Assembly (NCBI GenBank): GCA_013115145.1
Contig: JAAPAO010000310.1
Location: 1-40,691 of the forward strand
DNA from: Perkinsus chesapeaki ATCC PRA-425
Lineage: Eukaryota; Protista; Perkinsozoa
Length of the DNA: 40,691 nt
Direction of reading: 5' to 3'
The first letter of the stretch is position 1, and each line of letters starts with the position of its first letter. The notes under the pieces were generated by a model. The model worked only from the letters and a program-made list of their open reading frames with translations, was not told where the DNA came from and did not search any database. This document shows positions 108-40,691 of the stretch, one piece after another. The position numbers and the translations under genes were made by a program.

Positions 108-356
108 CGTTTTTTCTTTGAAGCCTTCAATGAGGCAGTCTCTATCAATATACAGTACAACACAAGCGAGCTCCGCCCCTTCGCACCGAAGATCTAGTTT
201 TTTAATGTTATTTCTTATTATTAATATTTTGCGATAGATAACGATTCATGGGGAGTCCAATAGATTTCGCGTACTGTAACATAATAATATTAATAAATTT
301 TATTAGTTATTTAAGCAGCTAAGTACTTTATGTTAAATATTTTTTCAAAAGAAAAA

Positions 357-386
357 TGGTGCTGGTGGGATTCGAACCCATGGCAG
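357..386 (-). pseudogene. tRNA 3' fragment (Leu/Ser-like T-arm plus acceptor strand) abutting a GALNT splice acceptor
   Basis: Minus strand CTGCC-ATGGG-TTCGAAT-CCCAC-CAGCACC-A followed by TTTTT: canonical T-arm, 7-nt acceptor strand, discriminator, terminator. No 5' half, because the GALNT exon begins at 387. Confidence 0.65.
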
Positions 387-3300
387 ATACGTCCCTATCA
401 TGTCCGGAGGTCTATTGGCAATGTCACGTCAATGGTGGAATGAGACAGGAGGATACGATACGAGAATGATTGGATGGGGAGGAGAGAATATTGATCAGAG
501 TCTTAGGATATGGCTGTGTGGTGGAGAAATTGTAATAATTTGGGGCGCAGTGACGGAGTGCTCGTAGGGGGGCACCGATTACGATCGACTGTGATGTGAA
601 AATAATATATAAATGGGATGAGGAAGAAGCGGAATAAACATTGAAATTTTTCCTTTGTGGGTATATTAAATACATATATTAGAACATTTATTTATAATAT
701 TATATTTTATATATTATTACCTATTAATTGAATAGTAACCATATATTAAATATACTCTATTTTTAGTTAACGGTGTGCACGCATGCACAAGGCAATATGA
801 TTCCTTTTTTAGGTGAATGCTCCCGATTCCTATGTAGCCCATATGTGGCGAGTTGCCAGCAATCCCAAGACGCGTCCAAAATATACAGTGCCGGGCGGGG
901 CTGTTGTTAATAATAGGTAGAAAGTCACTTGGTGGGGGAATTCAGTGGACTATTAAAATGAGCTTCCGTGAAGGGTGACCTTAGTGGCGCCCGCCGAATT
1001 TTTCAACCAATCCGCGCGTCAACCTAAGATTCCCCTACAGTCTCCTCTTCCTATATAGCTGTATTATCATTCAAAGCATGGAAGTTCACGGAAAGTCCAT
1101 AAGGAGAATTCGAGAAGTAAAAAAACTGTAGCGCAGTCACGGAGAAATATTTTCTTTTTTTTGCCCAAAAAATAAATTGAATATTTGTCAATGAAAATTT
1201 TGATTTCATTGTGATTTGTATCATATTCGGATTTCGCGGTAGTTTCTAGAAAATGTTACTGAGATAGCGAGACTCGATTATCTAGGCGAGCGCTTAATTT
1301 CGTGGCGAATCGTACAGATACCGAGCTGCTTCGGCGTGGTTTGATGATTGGATACAGAAGTTGGAGACTTTCCCGGCGTTCTCGGGTTATGGCACGGGCA
1401 AGAAACAGAAACCGGATATTAGTAGGTTTGAATATGGGATAGTAGGGCACAACATTGACTTGATTTGGGCTGACCTGCTGGTGTTGGGGACTTCAAACTA
1501 GCTCCTTTCCTAAATTCGAGTCGCTCAGTAGACGTTCGGGCCTAAGCAGCGCCAAGTAGGCACAATGACAGCCGTGACTGGGTTGAGTGTACTCTCTTTA
1601 ATAAGTTTTGTCATTACCGCAATAGCTCCGATTTTAGATCTGTTGTTGGTATTGAAATCAAATTATTGTATATAGTTGGTGAAAGACAGTGAACGCTGCG
1701 GGGATTGAATATGTTTTTGTCAGGCAATATTTTAGAAGTGAAAGAGCGACTGAAATGTAAACCGTTTGCATGGTTTTTGTACAGGTAATTTTTTGGAAAA
1801 TTTCGGAAAATTTAGAAAAGTTTTCCGCTTCAGATTCAGAGCCCTTTACTTTGATGCTGGTCTGGTCCCAAGTGAAGTTTTCCATTTACGTGATGAGAAC
1901 TCTGGTATGTGCTTGGAAGCGCGAGGTAAGAAAACTGGTAGGGAGAAAATCAGCAATGAAAATTTGGATCAACATTATTGCGGCAGTGGCATGCGCAACG
2001 GGGACGATGTTGCGCAGCAGCTGCTGCTGCTGGAGGGCCTATCTATGCTGTAGCTATTGGACCCGGAGTCCGGGTCCCGGACCAATGATAGAAAAGCTGG
2101 TTCACAATATCTTCGCCCTTGAGACCATAGTGAGCTTTACGATCGCCTCAAATGTTATTGGTCAACACCCGCTCGATAGAGCTCCAGCCAAAAGCGAAAA
2201 ACCAAGCAGACTTTGCATCATTCGTATGTTTCAGTGGTGTTACAGGGAGAAATTTTGGTATTAAGTGGAAAAATTTGAGGATAATTTCATAGAATTCTTG
2301 TCGATTTTATACCTGCCAACAAGGTGTCACGGTCACTCGGTGGGGAAGTTTTTTCGGGCTGTTTGAGGGCATTGTGGAAATGTTCCGACTTCCCAGCACA
2401 GCGTCGAGTCGATTGAGTAATAATGCTTACCAGCCTATTAGTGGCGGAGCGAAATAATGGCAAGATAAATAACTGATGTGTCGAGTTATTGAACTCCGGT
2501 GCACACTGTCAACTAACACTACTGTTTGGTCGTATTGGCAGAGGTAATGAGAGCATTGCTCCAAGGAACGGGGTTTACTCAACTTGAATCAACTCGAGAC
2601 ATACAAAACATATAAGGATTACTGTTATAAGCTTATATTAGATCAACTCGGTCAGACTGGGATAGTTGTTCTAAATGGTAGAAGGGCAGATTGTGCTAAT
2701 GTCCCTGTTAAGCAGAAGCTCTGTCGGAGAACCATCTGAAGCTAATGATCCCAAGACTGCTTGCGTGTAATCAGAAGGAGAGGATAAAAAGCCTATAATC
2801 GTCGACTAGCAACACATGACTCAGGAATATTGTTAGCAAATATTATGTCAACCGGCTAGCCTAAGTTTCATTTTGCTTATGGAGTATGAAATCTTGACCC
2901 GAGATCTCTGTGTCCAGAGTACCCGCGTCGCTCTCAGCTACGAACTGTCCTAGATCCCCCGGGCCAAGTGGGGTTCGGGCGTAAGCTGGGCATATCTTAG
3001 GAAACTTTTCCAGCATATCCTTGTACTCGTCCGAGTCCAGAGGCAGAGATAGAATAGCTTCCGGCTCATCTGGATCGATTACTGTAAATCCATGTGGTCA
3101 AATGGTTTGATGCTGCCGCCACAGGTGAACGTTATCTGCATACTCTTGGTGGGGGAGTCGACAACAACCCTGATGTTTATGAATGGCTTGTTCACGGTGT
3201 AATTGTATGTACCATCGTACGGTGGAGGTGGATTAACTTGTAGACTCCTTGATCCGTACTCCTTGAAGGTATAACCAGAAGCATGGTCCAATCCGATCGC

Positions 3301-6300
3301 AATGAAAATGGCCGATAAATTCATTTGAAAGGTTGAAAGCTGAACACCATGTAAATAACAAGTTAGAATCAAAGATAGAACTCAGATAATCAACTGCTTA
3401 GCTTTAGCGAATCTCGCCAAAGCTGCATCCTTTCGACGGCTCCGCGGGAGGCAGCTGATGTCTCCAATTTCTGGTCGTTTCCGAAAGCGGTTCTGCAAGG
3501 TTTCCGAAGTAGGCAGTTTCTTGAGTCGAGTATTTCGAATACCACATGAGTTACGTAGGCTAGCAGCGCTGGTTGTCTGCCCCATGTTTTGCCAAACGCA
3601 AGAACATGCAGTTAGGGGGCGGGACAAGGAGACCACTGGAGCCTCTCGCCATGGCGGGAGGAAGGCTCCCACTCGATCGGACCGACCGTGGGGCATGTGC
3701 CCACGCCATGGGGTGACGGAGAACTACCGCTAAATTCCTGCCATATTCTGTACAGTCATAGCTGTCGTAGATGAACCTTGTTCTATCGAGTTCAATCCCG
3801 AGACTAATCATACGAGACTAACAACGAGTTTTCGGTGACAGTTTTTTGCGCCAGGGTTAGAATTCACGTGACAGCATGTGCAGCACCGTTATTCGCAGAC
3901 TGACTTGCCCAACACTATAGGAGGACTGTGAAAGCATCTTAGCTTGGAAGGGAGGGGTATATGCATAGTCGAGTATTGCCAACACGAACGTTGTATTCGG
4001 TTGTTCCTATTGCTTACATCGTGGGTTCCTGGAGCCCGGCTCCACGGCATGATCTCGCCGCGCCGGTGTCACCGGTAGAGTTTTCATACGAGGTGCTATC
4101 AGAGTTTGGAGCCAGCACTGAATATAAGTATTTTGCAGTATACTCTTTACGTTTCTAACTTGTGCTGATATTTAGGGAACACAATTAGACCCAATGAATA
4201 ATTTAAACCCAATTAGGGCAACACAAACAAAATAGAATACCAAGTTTGGATGATCAGAATCTCATGCGACTCGTGTCACGAGCTGTATCGTACTGGAAGA
4301 ACGCCAAACGGTTTGGTTCAAATCTCGTCTGACAATTTGTAAGCTACACAAGGACTTATTATCCAATGATTGATCATCATTCAATTCATCGACCAGGTCG
4401 ATGACACAAGTGGCCGAACGAGTGGTGAATGCAGGTCGATTCGACCTCACGACTCGTCTTTAACGAGGGATATGCCCCGCGGTCATTTCACTTGTCTTCA
4501 GTCGACTGATTCAACTCAATACGCAACACAAATTGTGTTGTGTACTGAGTTAATTTGTATTGCGTTAGACAGTACTTTGGAACAGCCTTTTAAAAGTCAG
4601 AGAAATAGCTGCTATTAACGGTAACGAAGATCCCGTACAAAGAATAAGTGGTGTTCCAAGATCAGGGATCATTTCCCTGTTGGCCTGAGTTAGACTGTTC
4701 CAGATGGGGCAGGGTCATATTATGAAATTCAAATACGCCCTCGTTAGACCATCTAGTTTTATTGAAGTGGATTTAAATACTACAAATATAATGAAAGTTC
4801 TCCAATAACCGGTTTGCGTAAGGCTCTGAGCGAGCCCCGTGGAGCTAATGTCGATCAGCAGGAACCTCGACCAGAATCGTATTGAGAAGTAGAATGTCTC
4901 ACTCGTTGCTTCGTACTTTGACAAAACCTCCAGATCAGGTCAGACCAGGCCGCAAGGCTCCCGCGCGCGCGAGGGAGGACTGCCGCCGAAGGCCCCCAAA
5001 CGAGCTTGCCTGCATCGTGCGTGCAGGAAATCTTCGAGAAAGAGGGTAAAATATCGCGACACTTTTCAGAACAGTCACGATTCAGTACTAGTACTTGCCA
5101 GTCTATTATTGACCGCGAACGTCGAAACGGAATAATGGCAGCGCCATCATGGCAAGGTAGAGAAGTGATATGTGTCGAGTTATTTCACTCCGGATCCCAC
5201 TGTTAACTAACACTACTCGGAAATGCTGTCTGGACTCAAGTGGAGAACTACTAAGTCTCATGATCTCTTATATAAATCCTCATTCAGTCAAGTTAAGGCG
5301 TCGTAAAAACGGGTCATTGGGCCAGTATGCGTGCACCAGCACACACGCGCAACAAAAGGGAGCAGCTCTACAATAGAGCTGACGAATAATACTCGCCACC
5401 CAACATTGTAACTTGCTGTAACCGACCATTCTTTATTCTATCATGGGAAAAGATAACAAAGGAAAGAGTTGGACAGAACCATTGCACTTCAATGCTGCAA
5501 TTTTCACGAACTTAATGAGCGACATTTCGTGAACCATTTGACATGACTACTCTATAACTACCATATGCAGCAGGTGCAACTTCAAATAGGATGTCATGCT
5601 CTCGACTCCTTCTTTAGATCGACTGGAGCGTAGCCGAGGTTTGTAGACAGAATATGGTCGGCCATGTTAGCTACGAATTCCCCCAGATCACCCTTGTTCA
5701 GCGGTAGATCAGGGAAATCTGGGCAGAACCTAGTGAACTTCAGCAGCATATACTTGTACTCTTCAGACTCCAGATCGAGATCTAGACTGGTCTCCAACTG
5801 AGCTGGATTATGTTCCTCGAAATGGAAGGTGTGGTGATATTTTCCACCGTCACACTCGAACTTAATAAGCATAGTCTCATCGGCAGAATTGACAGCAATG
5901 ACAAGGTCCAGGTGAGGGTGCACCTCGCTGTAGGAGTATGTACCATCATAAGGCCGGGTATCTTCAAGTTGTTGAGGATAGCCATACTTCTCATAGGCGT
6001 AACCAGAAGTAAGAATGAACCCCATGAGAAGCATGAGAATAGCCGAGGAATTCATTTGATGGTATGAAAATTGATATGAAGCCCTACAAAGTCATTTGTT
6101 CTCGAAGACTAAAATATAAATCCCCGCTCCCCATAGCCCGGGACGTAGTTTGATAGCTGGGTGCCGCAGCTGTCGAGGAGACGGTCTAATAAAAACAGCT
6201 ATTGTCCCCCTTAACGGTTGTCTCCACTTTCTGGCCGCCACTCCAATGAGACTTGGCACGCGGTTCTCTGCGAAGCCTTCGAAGTAGCCAGCTTGTCAGC

Positions 6301-9300
6301 TACTGCCTAGTTCTCCCACTTGTTGCATGGCTCTCGGCGTAGTCAGAACCTGGAAGCCAGGGCATGAAGCCCTCGCCTTCTAGGGGACAAGAGCTCCTGG
6401 AAGAGCGCGCCGCCGCCGGGAGACAGGGACTCCCTGTCAGGGAGCCTTCGTCCGTTGCACCGTTGGGGATATCAGCTGTCGAATGCGGAACTGAGTGCCC
6501 TGAACTCGCCGTTAACTTCCTCCCGTGGTTTGCACAGTGGTAGGTCATCTATGAATGCTGCGATGTAAACGTTCATCCCAAGATGAACGGTAGGAGATTT
6601 ATTTGAGGGGAAAGGATGAGCGGGACAAATCTTTTAGCAATTGATTCAGCATATCGTTGTCCTCGTCTGATCCCGGAAGCACGCAAAGAAGAGCGCACCA
6701 CTCAGATCGAGTAAGTAGAGTGAAATTGAAGGTGCGGTCATATGGTTTGCCACCCTTGGTACAGCTAAACTTGACAGGTAGTCTCGGTGAGATTTTTGAC
6801 AAAAGCCGTAATGTATGAGTACGGCTTGCACCCGGGTGTGACATACCAGTGAGCTTTATTGTCTACCTTCTCTTGGAGTGAGCTTATGGAGCGCAGCTTG
6901 TGTGAGTGGCTGCTGCTATCCCCATCGCTGCTGCAACTTAGGCAAGACTGACCATCTTAAGTCTATGGCAACTGTAATGCAATACTCCATTTGATATATC
7001 GGTCTCCCGCATCGCCATTCAGCGACTCGCCAGGAGAGCTTGAGGCAAGCCATAGCTATGGACGAGCGACCTGTTCCGGATAAATGACCTCGCGATCTAT
7101 AGTTGTGCTCGTCCGAATATAAAACTGGCTTCTTATTTGAAAAGCTAATTTGATTTGACCCATCCATTAGAGTAGCTTGTCTCACATTTAGGGCAGTGGC
7201 TACTGCGACATGACTATCCCTGAATAAGTGAAGCTTTCCGGTGACCACAGTACGCGCGATCTAAAGTGCGGGTTTTGTGTCACCGGCATAACTTCTCGAC
7301 CAGACTACATGTCGACCTGAGATTTTGCACGGGCACTCTCCTAATATAGTTTTAATGTTAAAATGCTCCCCAGGTTAAGTTTTCTAAAATCGATTCTCGC
7401 TGCAGTTTTTTCCCATGCGCAAATGCCAGTCCAGGGTAAAACGGTTTCAAGTACCCGGATCGGCTCCGTAGTTAACTAGACGAGGGTGGAAAGATAATAA
7501 CCCCACACGTTCATTCTACACCGTTCCTTACACAGCTGACCTTTCATGAGGGCTCAGGAATAGCCTGGGAGTTGGCTTTCGCTCTTCCCCCTCATGTCTC
7601 GAATCCCATTGACATACCTCGGTCTACTGAGTAGAGGGTTAGATGTTTGCATTGAGTTTTAATACTTATCAATAAACTCTGGTGTCAATTCTAAGCCTTC
7701 GTTTTTCTAACCTGCATAGCAAATTTTTGGAACCGGACTTCATCCAGCCCGTCACGGGCTGCCCGTGCACTCAAGGCGCGTGCGGCAGAATCCGGGTACT
7801 ATTCGGTACTCTGCCTGCTGCAACCGAATCAGTTTATATATGTTACTAAACTTTAGATAGCACTAGGGTTAGCGAGTCCATGGTTCCGATTCATCAGATG
7901 CTACTGACGTGGTTCTAACGCAATGCTCGGAGAGCTCCAAGGGACAGCTCTGGCACAGAGGGAATCGCGATGGGAAGAAATGCTGCTCAGGCTTCCGGTA
8001 AGGGAGATATTTGTACCGACAATTTCAATTAAAAAAATCGCTGGAGTTCGGGTTTTGACGGGCTTGCCTCCCCGGACTGTACGCTGTTCATTATTCAGCA
8101 GCTATCCTTTATGGATCGATGAGCAAATATGAGAATTTGATAGACCTGCGTCGTGGTTGTCAGGAACTGGAACACGGATCAGTGCATATCGGCTGGGGGC
8201 CTCGGAGATGGGTTGAAGACTTACACGTGTAGCACCTACGGTGAATTCTGGGATCAATGGATCAAGCTGGATAATAAACAACTGTAAGGAAAAATGAAAA
8301 ACTTAATTATTTCCATGTGACTCTTTGGGGGTCTTCAACTGCATGCGGAAAAGATTTTTTTGGTCGCCTAGATCGACTGGGCAGGATTATTAAATTGTGA
8401 TTTAGATGGTCGTCGGCCCACAGCCAAGGCGAAGTGCATTTTTTTCTGAAAGCTCTTCATGTTTTTTTCAAAAATGCTCGGTGTTAAGTGCGGCTTTTCT
8501 CTGCCGTTTTATAGCGATATTTATCTGCCCTCGCGGAAGGTGCTCCTCAAAGATCAGATATTGCTCTCAGGATTTATTAGAGATTCCTGAACATGTCTCT
8601 AGAGGAGCCAAGAAAGCGTCGAATTTCGTATTCCTTCTGGGAAATTATGTCTCCCTGGTCTCCACATCGTTGATAACCTTTGTTGTTGTTGTTGTTGCTG
8701 TTGTTGAATCCTTTTCGCTTTTTTAGGAAATTATATTCTCAAAATCCTCGTGGTCGGAGTGGCTGCATCGGTGCTGAGCGAGAAAAAGGCGCTGAGGTCA
8801 CGATTGAGGACTGCGGCGTTCCCGGCTACAGACAAAGCTTCAGGGTGGGTATCTTTGCGCACTCGAAAGATTTTACAAGCGGCGTATCTTAGGTTGACCG
8901 GGAAACTGGAGGAATTATTGAAGTTGGCTCCGGTGAATGCCTTACTGCATCTCACGACCATTTTGAGTTGCTGCCCTGCGAGATCGACCCTGAATCGGGC
9001 AAGGTGAGCCCAGTCATGATTAATTTAGCGCGCGCCCGGGTGATCGATTGTACCAGGATACCGGTGTAGTAGTGATCGACGTCATTTTTTGTACACGGTC
9101 GGATATAGTCACGGCAGCGGTTATAGGTCGATGCGTCTCTAATGGCCAACGTCTATAAGATTTTTATATTGCGACTATAGTAAGATTCAGAAGTGAAGCG
9201 AATGTGAAACTGTCATAGGCTCCTAGTGTTTTCTAAGTGATAGACGAAACATGAACAGTGAAACGGCCAGTGATGGAATCGATCACCTGATCGATATGCG

Positions 9301-11101
9301 TTCAGGTTTTCGGTGAACAAGCCATCACCTTCACGGAGTTGAAGAGCAATCGATATCAACTTCGAGCCAGCGAAGTGGGGGAAGTGCCGCTTTGCGCGGA
9401 CAGTTCATCTGGAACGAAATTAGTTCTTTACTCGTGTTACAACCCAAAGGTAGGACTTTGACGTAAAAAGCGCGCGCCCAGTTGATCGATTAGATGAGAA
9501 ACAATAATCAAGAATGGGAGTTCCTGGAAAGGTTTTCTGATTTGGGATCGAATATCAAGTTTGGTGGGACGAAGTGTATGTCGGTTTTAGCTGGTGCGAA
9601 GACAACTCGGAAGGTAGGTATACAATCGATCACGTGATCGATTATGTGTATCAGGTATTCTACGACACTTGTGTGACTAATAATGGACTCCCCAAACCGG
9701 GTCAAAGGTTTGAGAAGGATTATTCAGGTAAATCGATTGCGCGATCGATTTGTATTTTTTTCTAGATTCTAAGTCTGAATTCGCCTTGCGGGACGGTAAC
9801 TGGTGTTTGGATGTAAATGAGGAAGGAGGAGTCCAAGTAGGGAGAATTTTTCCACTGGAAAAATTCATTTCTAAAATTTATACTTTTTTGCAATACTTGT
9901 AACGTATTCTGTTATTTTTTGCCTTTCTTCTATGGTCTGTTTCCTTGCTATTGCGGGAACAATTCCGATCTTTTGAAATTCAAGAATTCAATCCTTACGA
10001 TTTCTTTGCTCCATGGGTGCCAAGTTTCGAGTAATCGATCACGCGATCGATTATCGTATGAGGATGTGTTGATCAGGTTGCCTCTTGTGATGGCTCCAGC
10101 TCACAAAAATGGCGGAGCGAAGCTGATCAAATTTCCGCTCTCGTGAACATCGAAACTTCGATGTGCCTACAGGGAGACAAGGATGGTGATTTATCTATGT
10201 AAGCAGGTTGAATGACCGCGCGCCACGAAATATAAGCATTAGGCGATTGATAAGAGCGTATTGTTTTTTGCAAGATTTTGTGGCGCGCAAGAATGTGCAT
10301 TCAGTGTTTTTTCATGGGAAAAGTTTTGGGAATTTTCATTTTCCAGGTCATCATGCTCGTTTTCGCCTGGAGATTCTCAAAGATGGAATCTGGCTGAAAA
10401 CCTTGTTAGAGGCGGTGAGGAGGATGCGTGTATCGATTACAAACCGGTAAGATTATTAACTATTAATTATTTATGAACTATTAATTATATATCAATTATT
10501 AATTATTTATCAACTATTAATTATATATCAACTATTAATTATATATCAATTATTAATTATTTATCAACTATTAATTATATATTAACTATTAATTATATAT
10601 TAACTATTAATTATTTATCAACTATTAATTATGTTTTGACTATTAATTGTTTATCAACTATTAGTTATATATCAACTATTAATTATTTATTAACTATTAG
10701 TTATTTATTATTTTTCAATTATCAACAATTAGATCCACTTTCTCTTCAGGCATTCCCGTGAGAAACCTCTTAAGAAATGTTAATATTTTTTTGACGTTTA
10801 ATACTAGTTTCATAGTTCTCATCGAGAATTAATTTCGTGGCGCGGTGAAAAAGCATTATTATTGTTAGGTCCGAACGACACCGTTAAGCGTTGTCTCATG
10901 CCCTCGAGCAAGATCAATTAAATGGAGCATATATGAACCATTCGTAATAGCTAATGTTCGATATCGATCACGTGATCGATTTGGTTTTAGGAGCCTTTGG
11001 AGACTAGGTTGTACCGCGAGGCTCGCGGAAAATACCCGAAATTGCTTGCAGGAGAGGTTTCCCATACAGACGCTCCCGAAGGGAATATTATTGAAGTATA
11101 A
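387..11101 (+). CDS. GALNT: Polypeptide N-acetylgalactosaminyltransferase (GT27), 3' part; C-terminal half of catalytic domain plus ~9 ricin-B sub-repeats; 5' exons lie outside the window
   Basis: Exons with GT-AG boundaries and consistent phases: 387-531, 813-916, 1318-1421, 1724-1784, 1834-1925, 7898-7997, 8164-8283, 8727-8844, 8893-9003, 9306-9449, 9494-9613, 9655-9727, 9766-9836, 10077-10198, 10347-10446, 10869-10943, 10991-11101 (TAA). Translation includes YVPIMSGGLLAMSRQWWNETGGYDTRMIGWGGENIDQSLRIWLCGGEIVNAPDSYVAHMWR (Gal/GalNAc-T motif WGGEN...W.CGG...H), NRYRAASAWFD, LKCKPFAWFLYRF, then ricin repeats such as GMCLEARDATDVVLTQCSESSKGQLW and WCLDVNEEGGVQVASCDGSSSQKW. The exact last exon is the least certain part. 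Confidence 0.9.
2400..2525. repeat. Non-coding segment duplicated at ~5070-5220 (3' flank of family A copies 1 and 2)
   Basis: 2476-2523 vs 5170-5217 match at 42/48 nt; weaker similarity extends upstream (e.g. aataatggca in both). Confidence 0.75.
2861..3324 (-). pseudogene. Secreted-protein family A copy 1, frameshifted, nested in GALNT intron
   Basis: MNLSAIFIAIG...PPYDGTYNYTVNKPFINIRVVVDSPTKSMQITFTCGG stops at 3079; another frame continues ...LSLPLDSDEYKDMLEKFPKICPAY...PGDLGQF...LDTEISGQ...ET* (stop 2861-2863), colinear with 26841-27341. Span is 464 nt (not a multiple of 3), break near 3085-3095. Confidence 0.8.
5594..6055 (-). CDS. Secreted-protein family A copy 2 (153 aa, intronless, intact), nested in GALNT intron
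   Basis: Hydrophobic N-terminus MNSSAILMLLMGFILTSGYA; family motifs PYDGTY.Y, F.C.G, L.L..E.YK.ML..F...C, GDLG.F. Confidence 0.85.
   Translation of the reverse strand: MNSSAILMLLMGFILTSGYAYEKYGYPQQLEDTRPYDGTYSYSEVHPHLDLVIAVNSADETMLIKFECDGGKYHHTFHFEEHNPAQLETSLDLDLESEEYKYMLLKFTRFCPDFPDLPLNKGDLGEFVANMADHILSTNLGYAPVDLKKESRA
6570..6925 (-). pseudogene. Secreted-protein family A copy 3, heavily decayed
   Basis: KFSCTKGGKPYDRTFNFTLLTRSEW...GSDEDNDMLNQL aligns with TFTCGQTVRPYDHIFNFRVTGQGEW...DSDDYKDMLKQF of the intact copy; a KPY motif lies in another frame upstream; stops and frameshifts; boundaries approximate. Confidence 0.55.
9624..9643. repeat. Perfect 20-bp palindrome AATCGATCACGTGATCGATT (type copy of a dispersed intronic family)
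   Basis: Identical copy at 14106-14125; near-copies at 9278-9295, 9730-9751, 10032-10053, 10963-10980, 11197-11218; half-sites at 9040-9049, 9483-9491, 11541-11550, 12704-12713. Confidence 0.9.
10453..10710. repeat. AT-rich minisatellite, 18-nt unit AACTATTAATTAT(A/T)TATC, ~14 copies, in GALNT intron 10447-10868
   Basis: Directly visible tandem array. Confidence 0.9.
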
Positions 11102-11437
11102 TAATCCGTCACTGCGCCACAAAATTCCTGTGTTTCTTATTGTTATAACTTACTGTGTGTATAAGAGTTGATAATAGAACAGTGTTGTGTTGAGTCAAAT
11201 AGATCACTCGATCGATTTTGAGAATCTTGTAGATTTATTTTTTTACAAATTTTCATTTTAACCCGAAAAGTGTTGTCTGTCCCAATGACACAATTATTGT
11301 CCCTTCATATGTTTGACTTTATTGTTTCGTATCGCAATATCGGTAACCAGTTGAGTGACTACAGCAATCGAATGAGATTTCTAACCTTTATATTTTGCTA
11401 AGATCCTTAAGTAAGAAAGTCTTACTTTTTGTAAATA

Positions 11438-12883
11438 ATGAAGTTGTTATCTGTCAAAAAAATCGGTGATCCTAATAACCTGTATTTATTTTTGATGTAT
11501 CTTTGGGAATTATAACACCTTCTGAAAGATATGAAACGGTTGATCGATTTGTCGTTTCCCGTGTTAGTAGTATTTCTCAAATATGTTTCAACGTTCGCAA
11601 CCACTTTTCCGTGCGAGAAGAATAAATAAATTAGTTTCTAACATTTACAGGCGGAAGTGGACGAGAGTTTCGCGGTATTTCACAAACAGGGACAGAACAG
11701 CTATTGAACAGAAGAAGATGTGGGCGGTAAGATTCGAGGGAAGAGCGGTATGAAATCCTACAGGATTTAGATGAAAGAGGGGTATGAAATCCTATAGCAT
11801 TTAAGTATCTTCCGGCTTCCGTAGCTCAAATCTGACAGACTTGTTCGCCGAATCGCTATAAGAAATACAGTCTTCAATACTGACTTACGATCGATGGAAT
11901 ACCTGTCGGCGTCCTTCACTGCGCCCTATGGGGTTCTCCAACGAGTTCTCATTAAAAATACAAGTTTTGGTGATGGAAAATGTAAAAAATTACGGAAATT
12001 TCCTAGAAATTTTCTGTAAAAATTAAATGTCTCTTTGCCATCTTTCTCATCAACGTGGATATCGGAAATTATCTGGTGATGATTTTGTTGAAAAATCGTA
12101 GAAATTTCGGAGATGTTTTTGTCTTACTCTTTCCAATAAATTTTGCGACTGGTAATTTGTCCTTATGGGCCGGTCTCATTTTCTCCGTTAACCGAGGGAA
12201 CGGAATCTGTCAGATTCTCATACGGCAACCTTTCGTGTGCACGAGATTTCTCCGGCCGTCTCACTTAACGCCTTATGGCTACTCGAGACTACCTCGCTCG
12301 GAAATAGACGAGAAAAAATACGAGGAGAAATTCTGTGACATGAGCCGGTAAGGACATGCCGCATGCGAGGATCGAACCTGCGACCTTAGGCTCCACAGGC
12401 AAGATGAAGAACGGTTTGGACTGTCTCCGACGATTATGCGGGCGTTGGCGGCGAGCGGGTTGAGGCAGCCGCCGCTGAGGTCACATTGACATGTTTGATT
12501 GAGTTTCAGCGGTTTCAGAGAGAGTCGTGCGAAAACAGTTTTTAAATTAGTATTTTTGGGCTCAATTCGTTGGGATGGTTTTGTTTCAGGTAATAGAAAA
12601 GCTCCAAAGGGGAGGAATGTGGCTTAATGGAGGAAGATTCACGCGCCCAGATATTAATGTTATCAGTTTCATGACAGATATAAATACTTAGTGATGAAAC
12701 GGTTGATCGATTTGTCCTTCGGGTTCTGACTTTGTTCATTCCACTCGACGCTCGGGTTAGCTTGGCCTTTGCCGACCGTGTCTAGATGGCAGTGTCAAAT
12801 TCAATCCTGTCAACACAATCATTTTCGAAAGCAAACGGCAACGAAATCGGAATCTCGTCGGTAGACTTTTGGTAACATGGCGA
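11438..12883 (+). CDS. Multi-exon hypothetical gene, model incomplete
   Basis: Phase-compatible pieces: ...VFLKYVSTFATTFP|RKWTRVSRYFTNRDRTAIEQKKMWA|LKSDRLVRRIAIRNTVFNTDLRSMEYLSASF..., ...EIDEKKYEEKFCDMSR|QDEERFGLSPTIMRALAASGLRQPPL|SGFRESRAKTVFKLVFLGSIRWDGFVS (junctions 12347/12399, 12479/12510). No recognised domain; start, middle exons and stop uncertain. Confidence 0.4.
12357..12398 (-). pseudogene. tRNA 3' half (positions 32-73) filling most of a 51-nt intron
   Basis: Minus strand CTGTGGA-GCCTA-AGGTC-GCAGG-TTCGATC-CTCGC-ATGCGGC-A: 42 nt with exact canonical spacing from anticodon loop to discriminator; T stem has one mismatch and one wobble. Confidence 0.7.
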
Positions 12884-12967
12884 TCGCAGACTTGGTAGGG
12901 CACCAAATCGCACTAGATACTCTCTCCATAGGGGAACGTGTTCCACGTGTTTGAAATTAGACCCTCA

Positions 12968-15900
12968 ATGCCATCCTCGTCATCACCTTCGCCGGTTTCC
13001 AGCCCCGATGAGGAGATGCGAGCATCATCATCATCCACTGAGGCGTCAAGTCCATCGGGATTCTACGTCTCAACGTTACAGCCGGCAACTGCTGTGGTTT
13101 CTGCGAGGTCAATTCTGGATGGGAAGTATCTAGTCGTTGCTAGAATCACAGAGAGGGTAAGGAAAAATAGTTTTATCTTTCGGAAGGGGGTGCTCATCAC
13201 AGCTGAAATTTAAATACATTATTATTATTGATATCGGTTGTCAAGAAATCGTTTTGGAAAAATCACATTTTCTTAATTTCTTGAGTTAATCGCTTTGTTT
13301 GCTTTGTAGCTCAGTAGTCGGTGGATTACCAATGGTGATGGTCTTAAAAGAGCCCCTCCACAGTAGACCGCAAATACGTAATGTATCCGGAGTTGAGATT
13401 TGTAGAACACCGGGGTTGCTCCTTGCAATACATCCCCGGAGCAACGATCGCGATCGTAGGATAGATACGCTGGTCCCGGTGCCTGCGATCTAGTAAATGG
13501 AAGAAATCGAAATCCGCGCTGGTTTTCACATATGCCTTTACGTGGGAGCACCGAGCTGTTAATCTCGGTGGTAAGCTAGCAGTGCTGCTGCACTGCCAGG
13601 CCGATTGGCAAGCAGCTCAGCCCTGGTACTAATCGATATGCTTCTACCCTGGCCGAAAGTATATCGCTCGTGCTTGAGTTGCAAAGATTTCATGTGGTGC
13701 TATTACACGTGCATGCGCTTACACGATCTTCAAACTCTGTCATGTTCAGATACAGATTTTCGGACCTTTTATTGGTGACACAATACTCGACGGTGAGGAG
13801 GAGGAGGAAGAGGTAGGTTATTGTAAGATTCCATCTCGGCCAATCGGTTGAGTTCATCAGACCCGTCGTGTGATGAGGGACGGACCCCTTCTGGAGTTTC
13901 CTGTGATGGCGAGAATCGTTTCGATGGAAGTTGTGCAGGAGTAAGTTTTTTTGTAAAGATTCTTCCGCGAAATATTTTTAGCAATTTGATTTTCTTCACG
14001 ACCGCCAAGAGGCAATTTGGACTTTGGCGGTTCACTGCGGAACCGACAAACCTCGAGGTCATCGGATCTGGGAAGCTGAGCAACTTATATGTAAGCGAAT
14101 CGCTCAATCGATCACGTGATCGATTTTCTCATTTAGCCATATCCAGCGACTGACAGTTCTCTCCGAGCATGTCACATTGTCGCCTACAATGACAAGACTG
14201 GACTCATTGCGGTGAGTATGTTTATCCGACGGAATATTTCACAGTAAATTCACAACTGGGAACAAACGATCGATACAATCCACTGTGTCACGAGTACTTG
14301 CTTGCATTTAATTTTTGTATTTGCATTCCTACTCTTACCATCCGGGCCTGTGGGGCGGGAATGGTTACGGTGAACTTCAGAATCGGTTGGAATGTTTCAA
14401 TCCCTTCTAAATTGCAGTCTCTATGGTAGCAGCTGACCTGAGATATTGTGAGCTCGACTCGAAGGCGCTTGTTCTCTATCTCGGGGAGCAAAAGCTGGAT
14501 GGTTCCAAATGGGAAATTTACATTAATGCGAAGAAGCTGGGAAATGTTGGTCGTGAAATAATATTATAATTCATCGTACTATGCTTTCGCTGTATGAGTA
14601 TGCGTTATAACTTCACATCGTATAGGTACATCTCTTCCGTGGCCAATTGTTTGTTCTCGATCTCAATAGTACTGAGAACTCGGCACCATTAGCAGGTCAA
14701 GCTCTCAGGATGGATACCGTCCCAGAGGTGCGTTGTCTGTGGAGTATTCCGATACCTGCGACCAGGGGCCATAGATGTTTCGTCAGCTGATCCTACGGGG
14801 TGTAAAGATCACGATGATCATGACTGTGATGAGATTTTCGCTCGCCCAGCTAAAATTTCTTCATCGTTTGTCATTTTCCTCATTTACTCTGTTGTTGTAT
14901 TGGGATTGAACATCGTATGCAGATTGTAATGAACCTCATCATTGGAGTCAGAATCGTGAAGTTTGGGGATCATTCTTATACAAGTCGCGAGAAGCGAATT
15001 TTTCGGTTGCTATTTTATTCGCCTTCTCAGGCAATTGACATGTGTTTTCTACCAACTGAAGGGGACGACAGGAGAATCACTTTGGCGGTGAGCATTGGGG
15101 TGTTGTCTCGATATGCGGATGCTGCTCCGGGGGGGATGACGAAATTATAAAGGGTGTCTCATAACTACTTTTCATACGCTTTTGAATGATAGTTTCTCGT
15201 CAACCAGAAGTGTTTGAAAATGAAGGTATAAAGGTGTCTCAGAATTATACTGGCGGAGTTTCACACCAGCACTCGCCCTCTGGCCTCCACACGAGCCCTG
15301 TGCGTGAAAATTTTTCGGGAGGTCAAAAACTCGGAAATTTTGACCCAATTTTTACCTAATTTCCGGAAACCCTTTACATACTGAAAAAGAAATCGCAGGC
15401 AAGCCGCTCTGGCTGCTGAGGTTGTGTTGCTCACTGTAGTTTGGAAGAGCCCGCATCTTTTAACGAGTCGGGACCCGAGACTTACTCGGTTCGAAAACCC
15501 TTATCATCAGAAGGGTATCTTATATTTGTGAGAGCGTTGCGGAGAATGCGGTATGAGAACAATGTTCTCCTCGTAACGCCGGTGCAGAGGCGAATTGAGT
15601 GCTGATTTTTGTTATACTAAGCTTCACTTGGAGCAGTGTGTGTGCTGGGAGATAGTCAGAATATATTAATAAGAATAATAATGGTAGCGTTCGGACAACA
15701 CTAACAGTCCTTATCAGAATACGGAGCTGTGAAGGCGTAATGGAACTGTTCCTGTATGATCTTGTAGCGACCAATTATCACAACAACGCAACACACACAG
15801 CTAAATTAAAGATTCACCGCAATCACGCTACTTGCAGGCTGATTATAATTGTACTAGCTTCAAGCTAAGATACCATCATGAAAGGGGACGAGGGGAAGTC

Positions 15901-18900
15901 ATCACGCTCAGACTTTAGCTTGTAGGTTCTGTACAGCAAGGAGCCGCTAGCCTATGAGCTCGAGGTGGCATTCTTCATTCTTGATATGGATAGGAAAACT
16001 CTGGAGACGGTATGCCCACGTTGGTCTATATTTCACATTGTTTTACTAGGCACCTCTTGACACCCATCCTCGGATCGATGTGACTAACCGAGGCACCCAA
16101 AGGATACTTCCGTTGTCTTATAACGAGCTCATTGCGATCGGTATGTCTGCCATGGTTTCACAGTTTTGATTACTCATCGTGGGTTCTGTGGGCGGTTGGC
16201 TAAGTTAGACTGACACCGATCAACTTCAAGGAGCGTGACCAACCCGATTGTCTCTGAGAGTTATGTGATTTTATGTGACAAAACATCGCACTCATCAATT
16301 GAATATCTTAGGTTGATGCTTGAAACTTGCATTTCATATATCATCCATCTTGTACTGGGCTATACATGACCTAATCGATCGCTACAGCTTTTCATTCCGG
16401 CTAGATCGAGCGCATTTACTCTTTCAGGCCCCAGAACTGTTACTCGGTACATGGTAAATCAACCCATGGATGAAACTGATAGTCCGATTGTCGGCGAGAT
16501 AACGACCAAGAATCTGGGAAAGGTAGGCTTGGTTTCCGTAACAAGTGGGGCAAGCCGGAGAAGTTGGTATTCACCTTTTTCGGTTGGAGCTCAGCCCTTC
16601 CTGGGGATCCAGTTATAATGGTGTATACCAGGCTTCAGTCTACTATTTATGCAATGAGCTTTCTGGTCATTTTAAGTGAGTTCGACTACCAAACTCAAGC
16701 CAGTGATGTGTCTCTTACTGGCAGCGGATCGAAAATGGCAATAAGATAGAAAATTGTGGTTCCGAGAATCTTGCGTCAAACTCCTCCGACTCAGTGCCAG
16801 TCACTGAGACGTCGTAATGAAATGCCCCGCCCTTCTTTGCGTAGGTGACAGTTGGATTATCGAAGGGAGATGACAAATGGTTCGTGGTCGACGAAGAGGG
16901 ATGGCTGCACGTCATTAAAGGGTGAGATAGTATCAGTCGAGGGAAGTTTTCGGAAGAATAATTTTTGTTATTTCCTGACTTCCTCCATATCTCCCTAGAT
17001 TGCCTGTATAGAGGAGATAAGTAAATGCTCTGCAGTTTATGGGTATTAGTCATACTCTTATAATACAAACTTTACATTATAAAGTATGGGCTACCGTCAC
17101 GCGCCACGAAACTATGTGGTGGTCCGGATCCTTGTTAGTATTGATAGCGTATTGGCCCTCAGTAAGTTTCATTTCAACACACGCAGGATTGAGTGTTCGG
17201 CCCTCGCCCGAAAATGGAAGGGGACTATTCGAAGACATTTTAGAAAAATGTCGTGACTGAAATGAGGTCTTACACGAGCCCTACATCAACGCTTATCTTT
17301 CGTCACGCGCCACAAAATTAGGGGCCGTTTAGGGCAGTTCTTATTACTGATATCTTCTTGACCTTCATCGAGTTTCATTCCGAAACACAAAAGTATTGAG
17401 TGATTTCTGAGCGATTAAAGTCACTTACGAAGTCTTGGAACATCCTTTACGGCTTTTATTAGAATAATGTGCGGTGTACAGTGTTATCACCAGCGATGGT
17501 TATTACCCAATTTGGTGTTAATATTAGTAATTGCATTTATACTGTCGAGCACTCCTCCGGCCAGGTTGATGATAGCAAGTATAGGGGTATCGCTGTGGTA
17601 GCGGGTTCAGTCAGTTGTCATAATCTCCTGAGCTTTGGTAAAATTGCCAAATTGTTACCATAAGGTCGAATATTAGGGTTCTCAATTCCTCAACTTTTGG
17701 GAAATGTTTTCAGAAAATGATTCCTCCCTTTCCCAGGTTTCCCCAGAGTGGCTGCATTCGATCTTCCCTGTCAGTCTAGGAGTATATTTTCCGTCAAAAT
17801 CTCCGCTTTAGTGCGGCTTCCTTATCCCCGACTAACATATTTCTGTGTTATATCACTTCCTGTTTTACCTGTAAATTTCAGAGGCTCCTCGGCACCCAAA
17901 GATGACGTAGCTCCCCATTTTTACACAGCTGAGGGGAACGGTGGCCAAAGTGCATCTGGCAAGCGCCGACGGGGATCATCGACCCGAAAGCAAACCCGAG
18001 GGAAGTCAACCAGAACTGTGGAGGCGGAAAATAGGAACCGTTGCGGCCTGGACTTCGACGTGAGTCAACATTAGTAGTTATTTCCGATCCCTGTGTGCCA
18101 GACGCTCGGGCCGGTTTCGAGTGGGGCGAGCTCGGCGCTGGCGGTTCTTTTGGATGGAAGACTTATTTTCGTGGCGAGTGACTGTGGGGATGCGCACCGA
18201 CTTTGCACGGTTTCGGTGGGTTGAAATGTGGATGTGTTGGTCGATTGGTGTTTTCTGTCAGTCGGAGGCGTACACTGATACGGAATCATTTGTGAAAACA
18301 ATGTAAGCTACTTCTACTCGCTGGCATCTTCACATTGGAGATAAATGCGCGGAAGAGAGGGCGTCGACGTTTGTTTTGGAAATGGCATCGAAAACCCGAA
18401 AACCCGATTTAAACCCGAAAACCAAAATCTTCAGAAACCCGAAAACCGATTATTGAGAATGATTGTTTTCAGCTACGCGGAGCTCTCGCTTTCACCGATA
18501 ATAGACTTCCAGTTGCGCAGCGGAAACCAAGATGAGCTGATCATGGTCACTGGCCGGGACGAGTCATCATATGTAAGCTCGGGGAAGTGGCGGCGGGGGC
18601 GGGGGGGAATATACGGTAGACAGTTGCCTTACGGTCCTCTTACGTTTAACAGACATGCTGAAGGGAGATAATCAGAACAAGATTCAGATAGCGCGACATG
18701 AATCGTTTTTGGAACAACAAATTCGCATATGTGGCCCTCAATCAGTGAAGAGCCAGAAAATCTTGATCTGATCTCCGCCGGAGCAGAGAGTTTGAAAAGT
18801 TTGTGTTCGAAGTCATCGACTAGTTCTACTTCTTTGAGAAAGACCCTCTGGCAGTGCGGCTCCTGAAGTTCGTGGGTATTACTATTGAGCTCATTGCTCA

Positions 18901-21900
18901 AAGCGCCTGTGTGGTATATAGTACGTCATGCATAACGCAGATGTAGGAAGTCTTCACGGGGCGTTGATAGTGCATCGATATCCGTAGCAGACTCAGCACC
19001 CTGGAGAATGGCTCTTATTGAAGGCTTCCTTTGCCTTGACGCCCAGTCGACCATTGTTGTTTTCAGATTCGTTCCATGAGACTTGGCTTGTCACTGAGAG
19101 AGCTAGCTCGAGTGCGATGTGATGCCCCTGCGGATGTATGGAGCATTAGTACTCCTGGAAGTCGGCCACTACTGGTAAGGATGTTCCAGAACATACATCC
19201 TGTACTCTATACTCTATTATAGAGTCTCTATACTCTAGTATACTCTATACTCTATACTCTAGTATACTCTAGTATACTCTAGTATACTCTAATATACTCT
19301 AGTATACTCTAGTATACTCTATACTCTAGTATACTCTAGTATACTCTAGTATACTCTAATATACTCTAGTATACTCTAGTATACTAGTATNNNNNNNNNN
19401 NNNNNNNNNNNNNNNNNNNNNNNNNNNNNNNNNNNNNNNNNNNNNNNNNNNNNNNNNNNNNNNNNNNNNNNNNNNNNNNNNNNNNCTAGTATACTCTAGT
19501 ATACTCTAGTATACTCTATACTCTAGTATACTCTAGTATACTCTATACTCTAGTATACTCTAGTATANNNNNNNNNNNNNNNNNNNNNNNNNNNNNNNNN
19601 NNNNNNNNNNNNNNNNNNNNNNNNNNNNNNNNNNNNNNNNNNNNNNNNNNNNNNNNNNNNNNNNACTTATACTCTAGTATACTCTATACTCTAGTATACT
19701 CTAGTATACTCTATACTCTAGTATACTCTAGTATACTCTAGTATACTCTAGTATACTCTATACTCTAGTATACTCTATACTCTAGTATACTCTAGTATAC
19801 TCTAGTATACTCTATACTCTAGTATAATCTAGTATACTCTAGTATACTCTATACTCTAGTATACTCTAGTATACTCTATACTCTAGTATACTCTAGTATA
19901 CTCTATACTCCCCACTGTATTCACAAATGGATGCGGTTGGCAATGGATATTCAGGGATATTCCTATATTATCCATTGTCAATCCATTGTCAAGTCCTATA
20001 ATAGGACCTTTTGGAAATGAGCTCAACACCAGTACTTGTTAAATTATGTACATGCGGAAGTGTCTGTTATTATCCTAAGGTTGTTCATACTGCGCAAAAG
20101 CACTGTGGGTTTGGCAGGTACAGTCATTCGCCACGACCACAGTGGTGTATGGCTTCCTCACCATTGAGGACGATAATCGAACCGAGCTGAGTTAATCTCC
20201 CGGAACTCTGCAGCGTACGAACTCTATCTTCGCTTTTAGTTCCGATTGACTTCACCGGCAAGTTCGTCTCGGCACCGTCGCTTTGGTGCGGCTGCGTTGG
20301 TGGACTAGCAGTCCAAGTTACGGAGCGAACGGTGAGCTGTGCTTCTGTCGTGTGTTGTCCGACTAACATGTGCTCTTTCGGCTCGAGTCTTTGGTCTAGC
20401 GTTCATTACCACCACGTCTCCCTCCTAGCACTGGTACGTCACCCGCCAGGCCGACAATACCTCGTTAAATCTATACGGGCCACGTAGTGATCCGCAGCTG
20501 GAGTGGCGTACGTTTGTATCGTTTACAAGCTGTTGACATTCGAAGCCCAGCTGCTTCATCACCGATAAAACTCTAATCCGTTCCGGAACAGGATCGTCCT
20601 CGGCAACAGTTTTACGGTGGGACCTCCATCTTGAGTTATATTGCGAGATATATCCATGATAAATTATATTATTTAACTTTTATTATACATTTATATATAT
20701 AGAACAGCGAGGCATTGGTTGCTATTCGGTTGTCCCGAACCTCACAGAGACCAGGCTATGATTATATATTATATATATTATTTAAAATATTCGAACTTTC
20801 AAGTGAATGCTTGGTTGTTATCTATATCAGATAAGATTCATCGATGCCAAGTCGACTCCCCCAGTGCTGGTCTCCTCTGTGGATGTAGAGAACGCTGAAG
20901 CCTTCGTGACGGCCGATGGAGATAAAGATATTTTGTTCACTGTTAGCAGGAAAGGTGCCGATCGGTCGTCGAGTACACGCATCATGCCTTTTTCAGGGAA
21001 AGTGTTCTCGCATGAAGTGAACACGAAAACTCGCGCCATTCGATCTGAGGAAGTTCAACTGGACAGGTAAGGTTTCTACGGTCGAGCTCTGGTTACCTCA
21101 GTTCACCTATCAGGCCTGCGCTCGGTGCTTCGTGCATGTCGTATAAGACAAATTCGGGCGTTTTGGCGATTGGCTTGTGGCCATCAATTGGGAAGATAAA
21201 CTCCAAGCGGACGATTGTTGTAAAGCAAATGAAGGGTGGCGCGGAGAGAGAACTGAATGTAGGTTCTTCTGCTACTCTTGTCAGCTTTAGTTAACGTCGG
21301 ATGAATGAAGGACCGCCTGATTTTTGGAGGAGGCTCTTGAACGATGGTGGCGCTGAATAATTGTATTCTTACCGTTTCCTTCTTTGTGAATATGGGATTG
21401 AAGATATCCTATATTCCGACTTGCAGGTTGGATTCAAGGATGACTCTTCATTTTTGAATTTATAATCGGGCAAGCCACTGCCGATGCAATTGTTGTTCCT
21501 TCTATCAGGTCCCTTCCGATTCTTCAAAGTCAGGGACTTTGGTGCCAAGGTCGGTTATCCACTTTGTTGGAGTTATGATATCCTCTCTTATCAGATCGGT
21601 TGTAGTGTGCTCAGCTGGGGAACTGGGCCTCTCCGGCGCGCCGGAATCTGTGCTGATTCTGTGCGGCTTTGATGATGGTCGACTTTTTATTTTCTCACTC
21701 GACGACACCGGCTCTGCTCAGGTGAATTCGGTCGGATTTTGCTAATCGTCATTGAGGCATTTCAGGAGATAAATCTCGGAGGCGTGCGGCCAGTGATGCT
21801 TTCGAGGCTCGCAAGTGTTAACGGAGTGCTCGCTCGAGGTAGGCCACTCCCCCCTGCGGCGGTTGTATCTCATTGGCAGGCACCAATCTTCATTTCGTAA

Positions 21901-39644: not shown

Positions 39645-40691
39645 CTTCTGGGATCCATCTGTTGGCTCCCTCTGGCATCCTGTGAAGCTCTACTAGCGGC
39701 AACCCATCGTCTTCTCAGAGGACTCTTCTGAGGAGACTCTTCTGTATGGTTGTGGCTAATGGTGAGTCTTTCGCTGCCAGTGGCGGATCCATGCAGTATT
39801 CGGACAAGCTGGTATATGAGCCGTATAATATAACCCTATCTTTAACAGGCATTCAAGCTGATCGGAAAACCTTTTCTTGTATCAGAATAGAGTTGTTTTC
39901 AGTGCAATATGCGTGTTATTCATTGTGATTCTCTCTCCAACTTTCCGCTATCCGTGAGTCCAACTTGAAGAACATTTGACACCGCGTCTCATGTGCGCTC
40001 CCTGCCTTTCCCAAATGCCTTTTCGTCGTTTAACTCAATTTCCATGCTCGAGAATACGCAGCGGGATCCTTCAGACAAAGTCAACCACTGCAGCTAATCA
40101 AGACAAAATTCTTAACAGCGCCACTGCAGGGGAATGCTGCAGCGGTGCTCGCCCCTATGATACCACCCTGCTGGCAGGTACCGGGGTTGTGGGGGATGTG
40201 TTTCGCGGACTTTTCTGGGAAGTATGAGGTTGCCCTCGAGGTTGTGCGTCTCAAGACACATTTCCCTGTGAAGGCGAATCACCCATTTCACTCACTAAGT
40301 GAGTCTCACTTGTAATTTGCTAACTTTACACAATTCAATTGGGTAGAGGGCTTTCGAACGTCGCACGTGTCGTCGAAATATTCGCCCTCCTGAGAAAGTT
40401 ATTCAAACCATTTTTTGAGACACCCTGCAGTTAGTTGATACGGAACTAGAAGCTCAGGTGCGCTAACACAGCAGGACTTATGTTACAGGAGGAACCTTGA
40501 GAGATAGTTAGTTCACGTTAGAGATATTAGCGATTACCGAGAACATACCAAGGCCCTTGGTCCAAGGGCAGGCGAATACCCGCCGCGCCGGAGCGAGCGA
40601 CGGCGGACCTAGCTGAGTGCCCTTGGGCTCAAAACCCCCGGACCTAATGACGGTCTGGGAGGGAGAGGTGGGAAGAAAGGAGTCGGGACGT

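Follow-up and report, generated by a model that had tools for sequence, protein, structure and literature searches.

The stretch of DNA analyzed here, hereafter the window, is the entire 40,691-nt contig JAAPAO010000310.1 of the Perkinsus chesapeaki assembly GCA_013115145.1 (the accession prefix JAAPAO denotes P. chesapeaki, and JABANP, P. olseni; PMC11513098). It contains a GALNT gene, a short gene downstream of it (hereafter the middle gene), and a DDB1-like gene, and our subject is a 20-nt palindrome, AATCGATCACGTGATCGATT, that recurs in and between these genes. A scan of the window allowing up to three mismatches yielded seven matches, at 9277, 9624, 9731, 10033, 10962, 11198, and 14106, compared to 0.01 expected, and this number was reached in none of 100 shuffles. 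Two copies are exact (9624–9643 and 14106–14125), in agreement with the initial annotation, which had placed the same perfect 20-mer in the GALNT intron 9614–9654 and in the DDB1-like intron 14091–14136; the remaining five have one to three mismatches. The 9-nt half-site TGATCGATT is found 11 times, compared to 0.60 expected, always within 9041–14125 and never in the other 35 kb. The copies, together with composites in which a half-site is fused to a different word (M1 and M4), are located as follows; GALNT introns are lettered A to H.

9027..9049, plus strand: composite M1 (AGCGCGCGCC-N3-GTGATCGATT), near the 5' end of GALNT intron A (9004–9305)
9277..9296, unstranded: palindrome variant with 2 mismatches, 9 nt before the 3' splice site of GALNT intron A
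9469..9491, plus strand: composite M1 in the 44-nt GALNT intron B, ending 2 nt before the AG
9624..9643, unstranded: perfect 20-mer in the 41-nt GALNT intron C
9731..9750, unstranded: palindrome variant with 3 mismatches in the 38-nt GALNT intron D
10033..10052, unstranded: palindrome variant with 1 mismatch and the centre CACGCG, in the 240-nt GALNT intron E, 24 nt before the 3' splice site
10962..10981, unstranded: palindrome variant with 1 mismatch in the 47-nt GALNT intron H
11198..11217, unstranded: degenerate copy with 3 mismatches, 96 nt downstream of the GALNT stop codon (11100–11102)
11530..11549, plus strand: composite M4 (TATGAAACGGTTGATCGATT), ending 18 nt before the spliced-leader acceptor AG (11566–11567) of the middle gene
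12694..12712, plus strand: second copy of M4, upstream of the DDB1-like gene
14106..14125, unstranded: perfect 20-mer in the 46-nt intron 14091–14136 of the DDB1-like gene, 11 nt before the AG

Hence, as had been annotated, six of the eight GALNT introns carry the motif in full or half form, and a degenerate copy lies past the GALNT stop. Half-sites had also been reported from the introns of the middle gene; what is present there is GATCGAT at 11889, not the full half-site. Outside introns, copies are found in the 3' flank of GALNT and upstream of two genes.

All eight GALNT introns have GT..AG boundaries, and their removal leaves a single open frame with a Ricin_B lectin domain. The exon structure of the DDB1-like gene was obtained by tblastx against P. 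olseni; its intron 14091–14136 is in phase 0, and the exons on both sides are conserved in P. olseni. The label DDB1, taken from the initial annotation, holds at the level of the DDB1/CPSF160/SF3B3 family and not for DDB1 specifically, as the matches on the P. olseni neighbor are to CPSF_A and to the RSE1 beta-propeller; single exons of the P. chesapeaki gene had no Pfam or PDB match. The available RNA contigs come from four small 454 metatranscriptome runs, and their coverage is limited to the middle gene, for which they provide splice joints; the GALNT and DDB1-like introns are supported by reading frame plus orthology.

11568..12511, plus strand: middle gene, exons 11568–11725, 12213–12346, and 12389–12511, from RNA joints and loose ends

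The mRNA of the middle gene is trans-spliced to a spliced leader and polyadenylated, with the poly(A) tail near 12511, and its joints define two GT..AG introns, 11726–12212 and 12347–12388, so that RNA bears out an intron as short as 42 nt. The RNA depth reaches 65, compared to about 0–1 for the adjacent genes. In the RNA contigs, a loose 5' end, GTCCGTAGCCATTTTGGCTCA, precedes 11566–11569 and corresponds to a dinoflagellate-type spliced leader; the spliced leaders of P. marinus differ from it by one or two letters (PMC3101222). As the library was made by reverse transcription PCR, the letters of the leader are possibly primer-derived. The encoded protein of 125 amino acids (aa) has no Pfam domain. 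An antisense tRNA-like fragment ends at a splice acceptor (window 352–386 and 12347–12388) and has a counterpart at the orthologous P. olseni acceptor (ca. 4205–4237 of the locus L001 introduced below). Other RNA contigs of the same runs join 9028–9049 with 10033–10055 and 10213–10230 with 12694–12711, arrangements that differ from the window. The motif words are therefore present at further places as well, in the genome of P. chesapeaki or a relative, carry-over of DNA into the libraries being possible.

The palindrome is comprised of two self-complementary ATCGAT cores that are always 12 bp apart, which is about one helical turn. The dyad unit, ATCGAT with its flanks, reads (A)AATCGATC / GATCGATT(T). 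Among the twelve palindromes of P. chesapeaki and P. olseni, variation is restricted to positions 1, 9–12, and 20, and the two hexamers, C8, and G13 are nearly invariant. The half-site is also fused to a GCGCGC dyad, yielding the composite M1 (AGCGCGCGCC-N3), which is found in both orientations, and to GAAACGGT / ATGAAACGGT, yielding the composite M4. In P. chesapeaki, the intron H copy and the DDB1-like copy have the same centre, CACGTG; in P. olseni, the centre of both is CGCGTG. These centres, shared within each species, hint at coordinated change between copies, in what is a small sample.

The cluster is accompanied by a further word, M3 (AATTTCGTGGCGCG), which is E2F-like and occurs in introns and spacers, with eight matches in the window compared to 0.21 expected. 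It is non-palindromic and is found in both orientations within plus-strand genes.

10219–10232 and 10274–10287, both orientations: inverted pair of M3 in GALNT intron F
10831–10844, plus strand: M3
11113–11126, minus strand: M3
17100–17113, minus strand: M3
17306–17319, minus strand: M3
L001 4408, 4428, 9150, 9746, and 10683: M3 in P. olseni

M3 is conserved at orthologous sites; in particular, the inverted pair of intron F is present in both species, with different spacing.

To assess conservation, we compared two species over about 60 kb. P. olseni FOZ60_014324 and the middle-gene protein share 94% identity, and the contig encoding the former constitutes the locus L001. The gene order there is the same: GALNT (872 aa), the 125-aa gene, a 448-aa gene, and an 854-aa CPSF_A / RSE1-propeller gene. 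In a frame-checked model, the C-terminal part of the P. olseni GALNT is interrupted by eight GT-AG introns, each placed exactly as in P. chesapeaki, which, together with the single frame, supports the annotated introns. The nucleotide identity of exons between the window and L001 is 64–82%, and the amino-acid identity of GALNT is 65%. Four-fold degenerate sites are identical in 26 cases out of 84 (31%), compared to 25% expected from composition, and hence the neutral sites are saturated.

Against this background, L001 is also enriched in the motif, with ten half-sites and five palindromes (0.01 expected for the latter), and for seven of the eleven window sites P. olseni has a corresponding copy within the orthologous intron or spacer.

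GALNT intron A, 5' part; window 9027, L001 6691–6713: composite M1 in both species
GALNT intron A, 3' part; window 9277, L001 6906–6928: palindrome variant in P. chesapeaki, reverse M1 in P. olseni
GALNT intron B; window 9469, L001 7109–7131: composite M1
GALNT intron D; window 9731, L001 8825–8844: palindrome variant
GALNT intron H; window 10962, L001 9575–9594: palindrome variant
DDB1-like intron; window 14106, L001 12025–12044: palindrome; in L001 the intron is 290 nt long and the copy is 13 nt from its AG
Upstream of the trans-splice acceptor; window 11530, L001 9953–9972: composite M4, 20 of 20 letters identical

The L001 site 6906–6928 retains AATCGATCAC, but fused to GGCGCGCGCT. No P. 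olseni counterpart was found for 9624, 10033, 11198, and 12694. Intron E, which harbors 10033, is 81 nt long in P. olseni and has no palindrome. Intron C, in P. chesapeaki a 41-nt intron (9614–9654) that is nearly all extended hairpin, is 1452 nt long in P. olseni (L001 7269–8720), without the motif. Conversely, the L001 copies at 3914, 6274, 11188, 13512, and 13913 are found in P. olseni only. Part of the sites turn over, and a core set is kept. The sister-species comparison of GALNT and DDB1-like introns proposed at the outset has thus shown all positions to be common and the motif to be retained at a majority of sites.

The words shared by orthologous introns were also identified irrespective of the motif, by comparing the longest common word of each intron pair with 200 shuffles. 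These words are GGTGATCGATT in intron A, AAAAGCGC in intron B, CGCGCCACGAAAT in intron F (conserved in P. olseni over 13 nt), CGTGATCGATT in intron H, and TATGAAACGGTTGATCGATT in the spacer, and their lengths were reached by 0–3 shuffles out of 200 (by none for intron H). Introns D and G were only marginal (15 and 11 shuffles out of 200, respectively), and in introns C and E the longest shared word did not exceed the chance level in this comparison. Moreover, an unbiased list of 11-mers that are shared by the two loci and recur in both is reduced to four families, namely ATCGAT, AATTTCGTGGCGCG (M3), ATGAAACGGTT (M4), and the splice-junction word TATCTTAGGTTGA.

At the given divergence, a neutral 20-mer is expected to be ca. 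30% identical, whereas the motif retains 18–19 letters out of 20 between the species at intron H and the DDB1-like intron. This speaks for purifying selection acting on the 20-mer as a cis-element. The palindrome recurs and clusters, it has been kept at orthologous sites although neutral divergence is saturated, and its copies lie both within and outside introns; judging from the comparison of the two loci, it is a selectively constrained cis-element rather than a mobile element.

We looked for further Perkinsus species: a search with the middle-gene protein found the P. olseni ortholog alone, a 242-aa open reading frame (ORF) matched itself alone, and a GALNT exon compared with 1.84 billion representatives retrieved paralogues only. 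In Joint Genome Institute (JGI) metagenome contigs, a scan for the 20-mer gave 11 isolated matches without clusters, on unrelated contigs with the GC-content of 37–63%, which is the chance level. The 18-mer core of the palindrome does not occur in any paper of the literature searched, where shorter words are met in primers only, and no paper in it connects ATCGAT with perkinsids, dinoflagellates, or apicomplexans. Five GALNT paralogues outside Perkinsus, on very compact environmental contigs including L014, L016/L017, and L019, were examined and have no enrichment in the ATCGAT motif. The genes called on L014, L016/L017, and L019, which carry the closest GALNT paralogues outside Perkinsus, are uninterrupted ORFs, apparently intronless, and are 20–100 nt apart.

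The initial annotation had considered an intron-generating or intron-homing element. The introners of Amoebophrya have inverted repeats of 8–20 nt at intron ends and direct repeats of 3–5 nt over the boundaries, often use non-canonical splice sites, and are strain-specific (PMC7789003). As in that system, a hairpin-capable identical sequence is present in many unrelated introns of an alveolate. Unlike in Amoebophrya, it is an internal core, the GT-AG junctions have no repeats, and both the introns and the motif are common to species. In particular, similarity over whole introns, a feature of introners, was not found, the 20-nt core being flanked by unrelated intronic sequence; no target-site duplication or direct repeat is consistent beyond AG|GT over the junctions of the seven motif introns; and no intron is a recent gain, since all eight GALNT positions and the DDB1-like intron are common to P. 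chesapeaki and P. olseni. These observations do not support an intron-generating or intron-homing element, and local hopping, suggested as the cause of the cluster at 9–14 kb, is superfluous, as the cluster itself is conserved in both species.

An older mobile origin would be less visible. The palindrome could be the fossil core of an ancient introner or a miniature inverted-repeat transposable element (MITE) that seeded or invaded introns before the species split and of which only the inverted-repeat core is recognizable now. This would account for identical 20-mers in unrelated introns and for introns C and E with the motif in one species only; inverted-repeat introners have a precedent in Amoebophrya (PMC7789003), and many transposon-scar-like palindromes are present in the same genome. 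Moreover, P. olseni intron A has 23-nt inverted repeats located 16 and 23 nt inside its ends. These repeats are 192 nt apart and possibly flanked by an AAAT repeat, their interior is unalignable between the species, and there is no second copy in the 60 kb. On the other hand, 20 nt alone are shared, with flanks and junctions free of direct repeats, all intron positions are common to both species, the splice sites are canonical GT-AG, and some copies lie outside introns. Besides, a neutral relic could not remain 90–95% identical with synonymous sites at 31%, so that selection must be invoked even for a relic. We consider a fossil element unlikely. Also improbable, in our estimate, is a combined history: the palindrome would be the domesticated core of an ancient hairpin-type element that once seeded or colonized micro-introns of the Perkinsus ancestor, and selection or copy-to-copy correction would have preserved it since. 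It would then represent an introner family that was co-opted for splicing or binding. Such correction is hinted at by the shared centres of the intron H and DDB1-like copies, which read CACGTG in P. chesapeaki and CGCGTG in P. olseni.

Repair scars of hAT-type transposon excision could be invoked because short perfect palindromes are about ten times more frequent in the window than in shuffles. However, such scars copy local flanks, and each should be unique; here one even-centred sequence recurs, with a fixed 12-bp dyad spacing at orthologous sites and with seven and five sites in the two species. Recurrence and orthology contradict this explanation, which is extremely improbable. The short palindromes of the window form a separate class, mostly unique, with a 1-nt centre, and often overlapping in doubles.

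2059–2082, 6422–6444, 7745–7767, 33532–33553, 34380–34401, and 40290–40311: examples of palindromes with a 1-nt centre

A structural or protein-binding splicing signal, the other possibility raised in the initial annotation, fares better with the conservation. In micro-introns, the palindrome is about central, with 3–18 nt before it and 9–15 nt after it. In long introns, all seven copies are at most 37 nt from one end: near the 3' end in window introns A and E, L001 intron A, and the L001 DDB1-like intron, and near the 5' end in window intron A, L001 intron A, and at L001 3914. Overall, intronic copies are 2–24 nt from the 3' splice site or 15–37 nt from the 5' splice site. The RNA of palindromic micro-introns is predicted to form hairpins of −8 to −16 kcal/mol (−16.3 kcal/mol for intron C, z = −4.5). 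The two copies within intron A are predicted to pair with each other, 5' with 3', in the minimum-energy fold of either species (z = −4.3 for P. olseni, +0.8 for P. chesapeaki). Intron B, which has a half-site only, has no predicted hairpin (z = +2.1). The hairpin arms are invariant, with no compensatory changes, and Rfam covariance models had no match in 8500–14500 at E up to 1. A branch-point role was rejected, as the motif ends 2–3 nt from the AG in intron B, at L001 6274, and at L001 13913.

These data are consistent with an RNA-level element, a hairpin or AUCGAU bound by an RNA-binding protein near the splice sites of micro-introns and near the trans-splice acceptor, which could tune splicing or intron retention, the paired copies zipping the ends of long introns. 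The hairpins, the pairing within intron A, the closeness of the copies to splice sites, and the M4 copy that ends 18 nt before an acceptor AG verified by RNA are all in line with it. However, folding is impossible for the conserved half-sites located in intron B and before the middle gene, the invariant arms offer no compensatory changes, the companion motif M3 is independent of orientation, and most introns of the window, including both RNA-confirmed ones, have no motif. Furthermore, closeness to intron ends is by itself no proof of a role in splicing: end-proximal copies are expected if micro-introns later grew by internal insertion, and the DDB1-like intron is 46 nt long in P. chesapeaki and 290 nt long in P. 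olseni, where the AG follows the palindrome after 11 and 13 nt, respectively. With copies also outside introns, no observation links the motif to splicing in particular, and an RNA-level role is the less probable explanation.

Our favored reading, to which we assign a probability of roughly 0.5, is that the 20-mer is a predicted DNA-level binding site of two ATCGAT dyads 12 bp apart. It would be part of a limited repertoire of conserved motifs that occupy the micro-introns and spacers around a strongly expressed, trans-spliced gene. Four features favor this reading: the palindrome has dyad symmetry and a constant spacing of one turn, half-sites that are unable to fold are conserved, and the companion motifs are free of orientation; in particular, half-sites lacking the partner arm are conserved yet unfolded, and hence the constraint is on the sequence and not on the hairpin. 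A dimeric sequence-specific protein would read the palindrome as double-stranded DNA, and the palindrome would be one of a small set of regulatory words that includes the E2F-like AATTTCGTGGCGCG. In this compact genome, such words might be housed only in micro-introns, outrons, 3' flanks, and short spacers. The cluster of ca. 5 kb (10 kb in P. olseni) could then be a homotypic regulatory domain around the highly expressed trans-spliced gene and its neighbors, with an effect on transcription or chromatin. Several points count against a DNA-level site. All copies, except possibly those at 11198 and 12704, are within transcribed pre-mRNA; each of the seven copies in long introns lies no more than 37 nt from a splice site, and hairpins are predicted for the small introns; orientation says little about the palindrome itself, as ATCGAT and GCGCGC are identical on both strands; and the comparison covers two species and ∼60 kb of sequence.

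Several known systems resemble this arrangement in part. In Drosophila, the DNA replication-related element (DRE, TATCGATA) serves as a promoter and insulator motif to which DREF and BEAF-32 bind, and motifs of the DRE/DREF type are bound by a BED-finger protein. Similarly to the DRE, a resemblance of sequence only, the Perkinsus motif has a palindromic ATCGAT core, copies just upstream of genes, clusters, and an E2F-like GC-rich motif nearby. It differs from the DRE in the double dyad with the fixed 12-bp spacing, the centre CACGTG/CGCGTG, the location mostly in micro-introns, and the alveolate host. The M4 copies are 18 nt and about 47 nt or more upstream of the acceptor or gene starts, and most motif copies are intronic. 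The signals of intron-mediated enhancement in plants, such as the pentamer CGATT and TTNGATYTG (PMC3141229), are short redundant intronic words that raise expression, and every half-site here includes CGATT, again a mere resemblance. However, the plant signals are loose words acting within ca. 1 kb of the transcription start, whereas the Perkinsus motif is a 20-bp palindrome, and within GALNT its copies are over 9 kb away from the gene start; proximal copies are confined to the DDB1-like gene. Finally, like phylogenetic footprints of compact genomes, the motif forms near-identical islands in unalignable non-coding DNA, with turnover of sites; unlike footprints, it takes up about half of introns of 38–47 nt and is a recurrent family and not a unique element.

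Perkinsus are parasites behind major losses of oysters and clams, and gene regulation in them is almost unstudied. The palindrome provides a concrete candidate cis-element, 20 bp long, conserved despite saturated silent sites, found in clusters at few loci, and joined by two companion motifs. Possible uses are the isolation of the binding factor and the improvement of Perkinsus expression vectors. It also calls for caution in scans for introners, as the recurrence of one sequence in many introns need not imply mobility: in introns of 40 nt, conserved regulatory words can fill half of the intron and mimic an introner family.

Other repeated sequences were observed in the same loci. Another recurrent palindrome family, AATTTTCC-GGAAAATT, occurs in introns of both species.

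Window 9844–9866 and 11996–12012; L001 1039–1054, 6825–6839, 12738–12755, and 14370–14391: AATTTTCC-GGAAAATT family

GALNT intron G contains an AT-rich tandem array (10447–10700). Between the two halves of the DDB1-like gene, at 19200–19900, lies a long AGTATACTCTAGTATACT array with a run of N. The word TATCTTAG|GTTGA recurs at 8885–8897, 16304–16316, and 1019–1031 (minus strand) of the window and at L001 11503 and 17535. At 8885 it falls exactly on a 3' splice junction, and the same acceptor with the first exon letters is reused at unrelated exons in both species.

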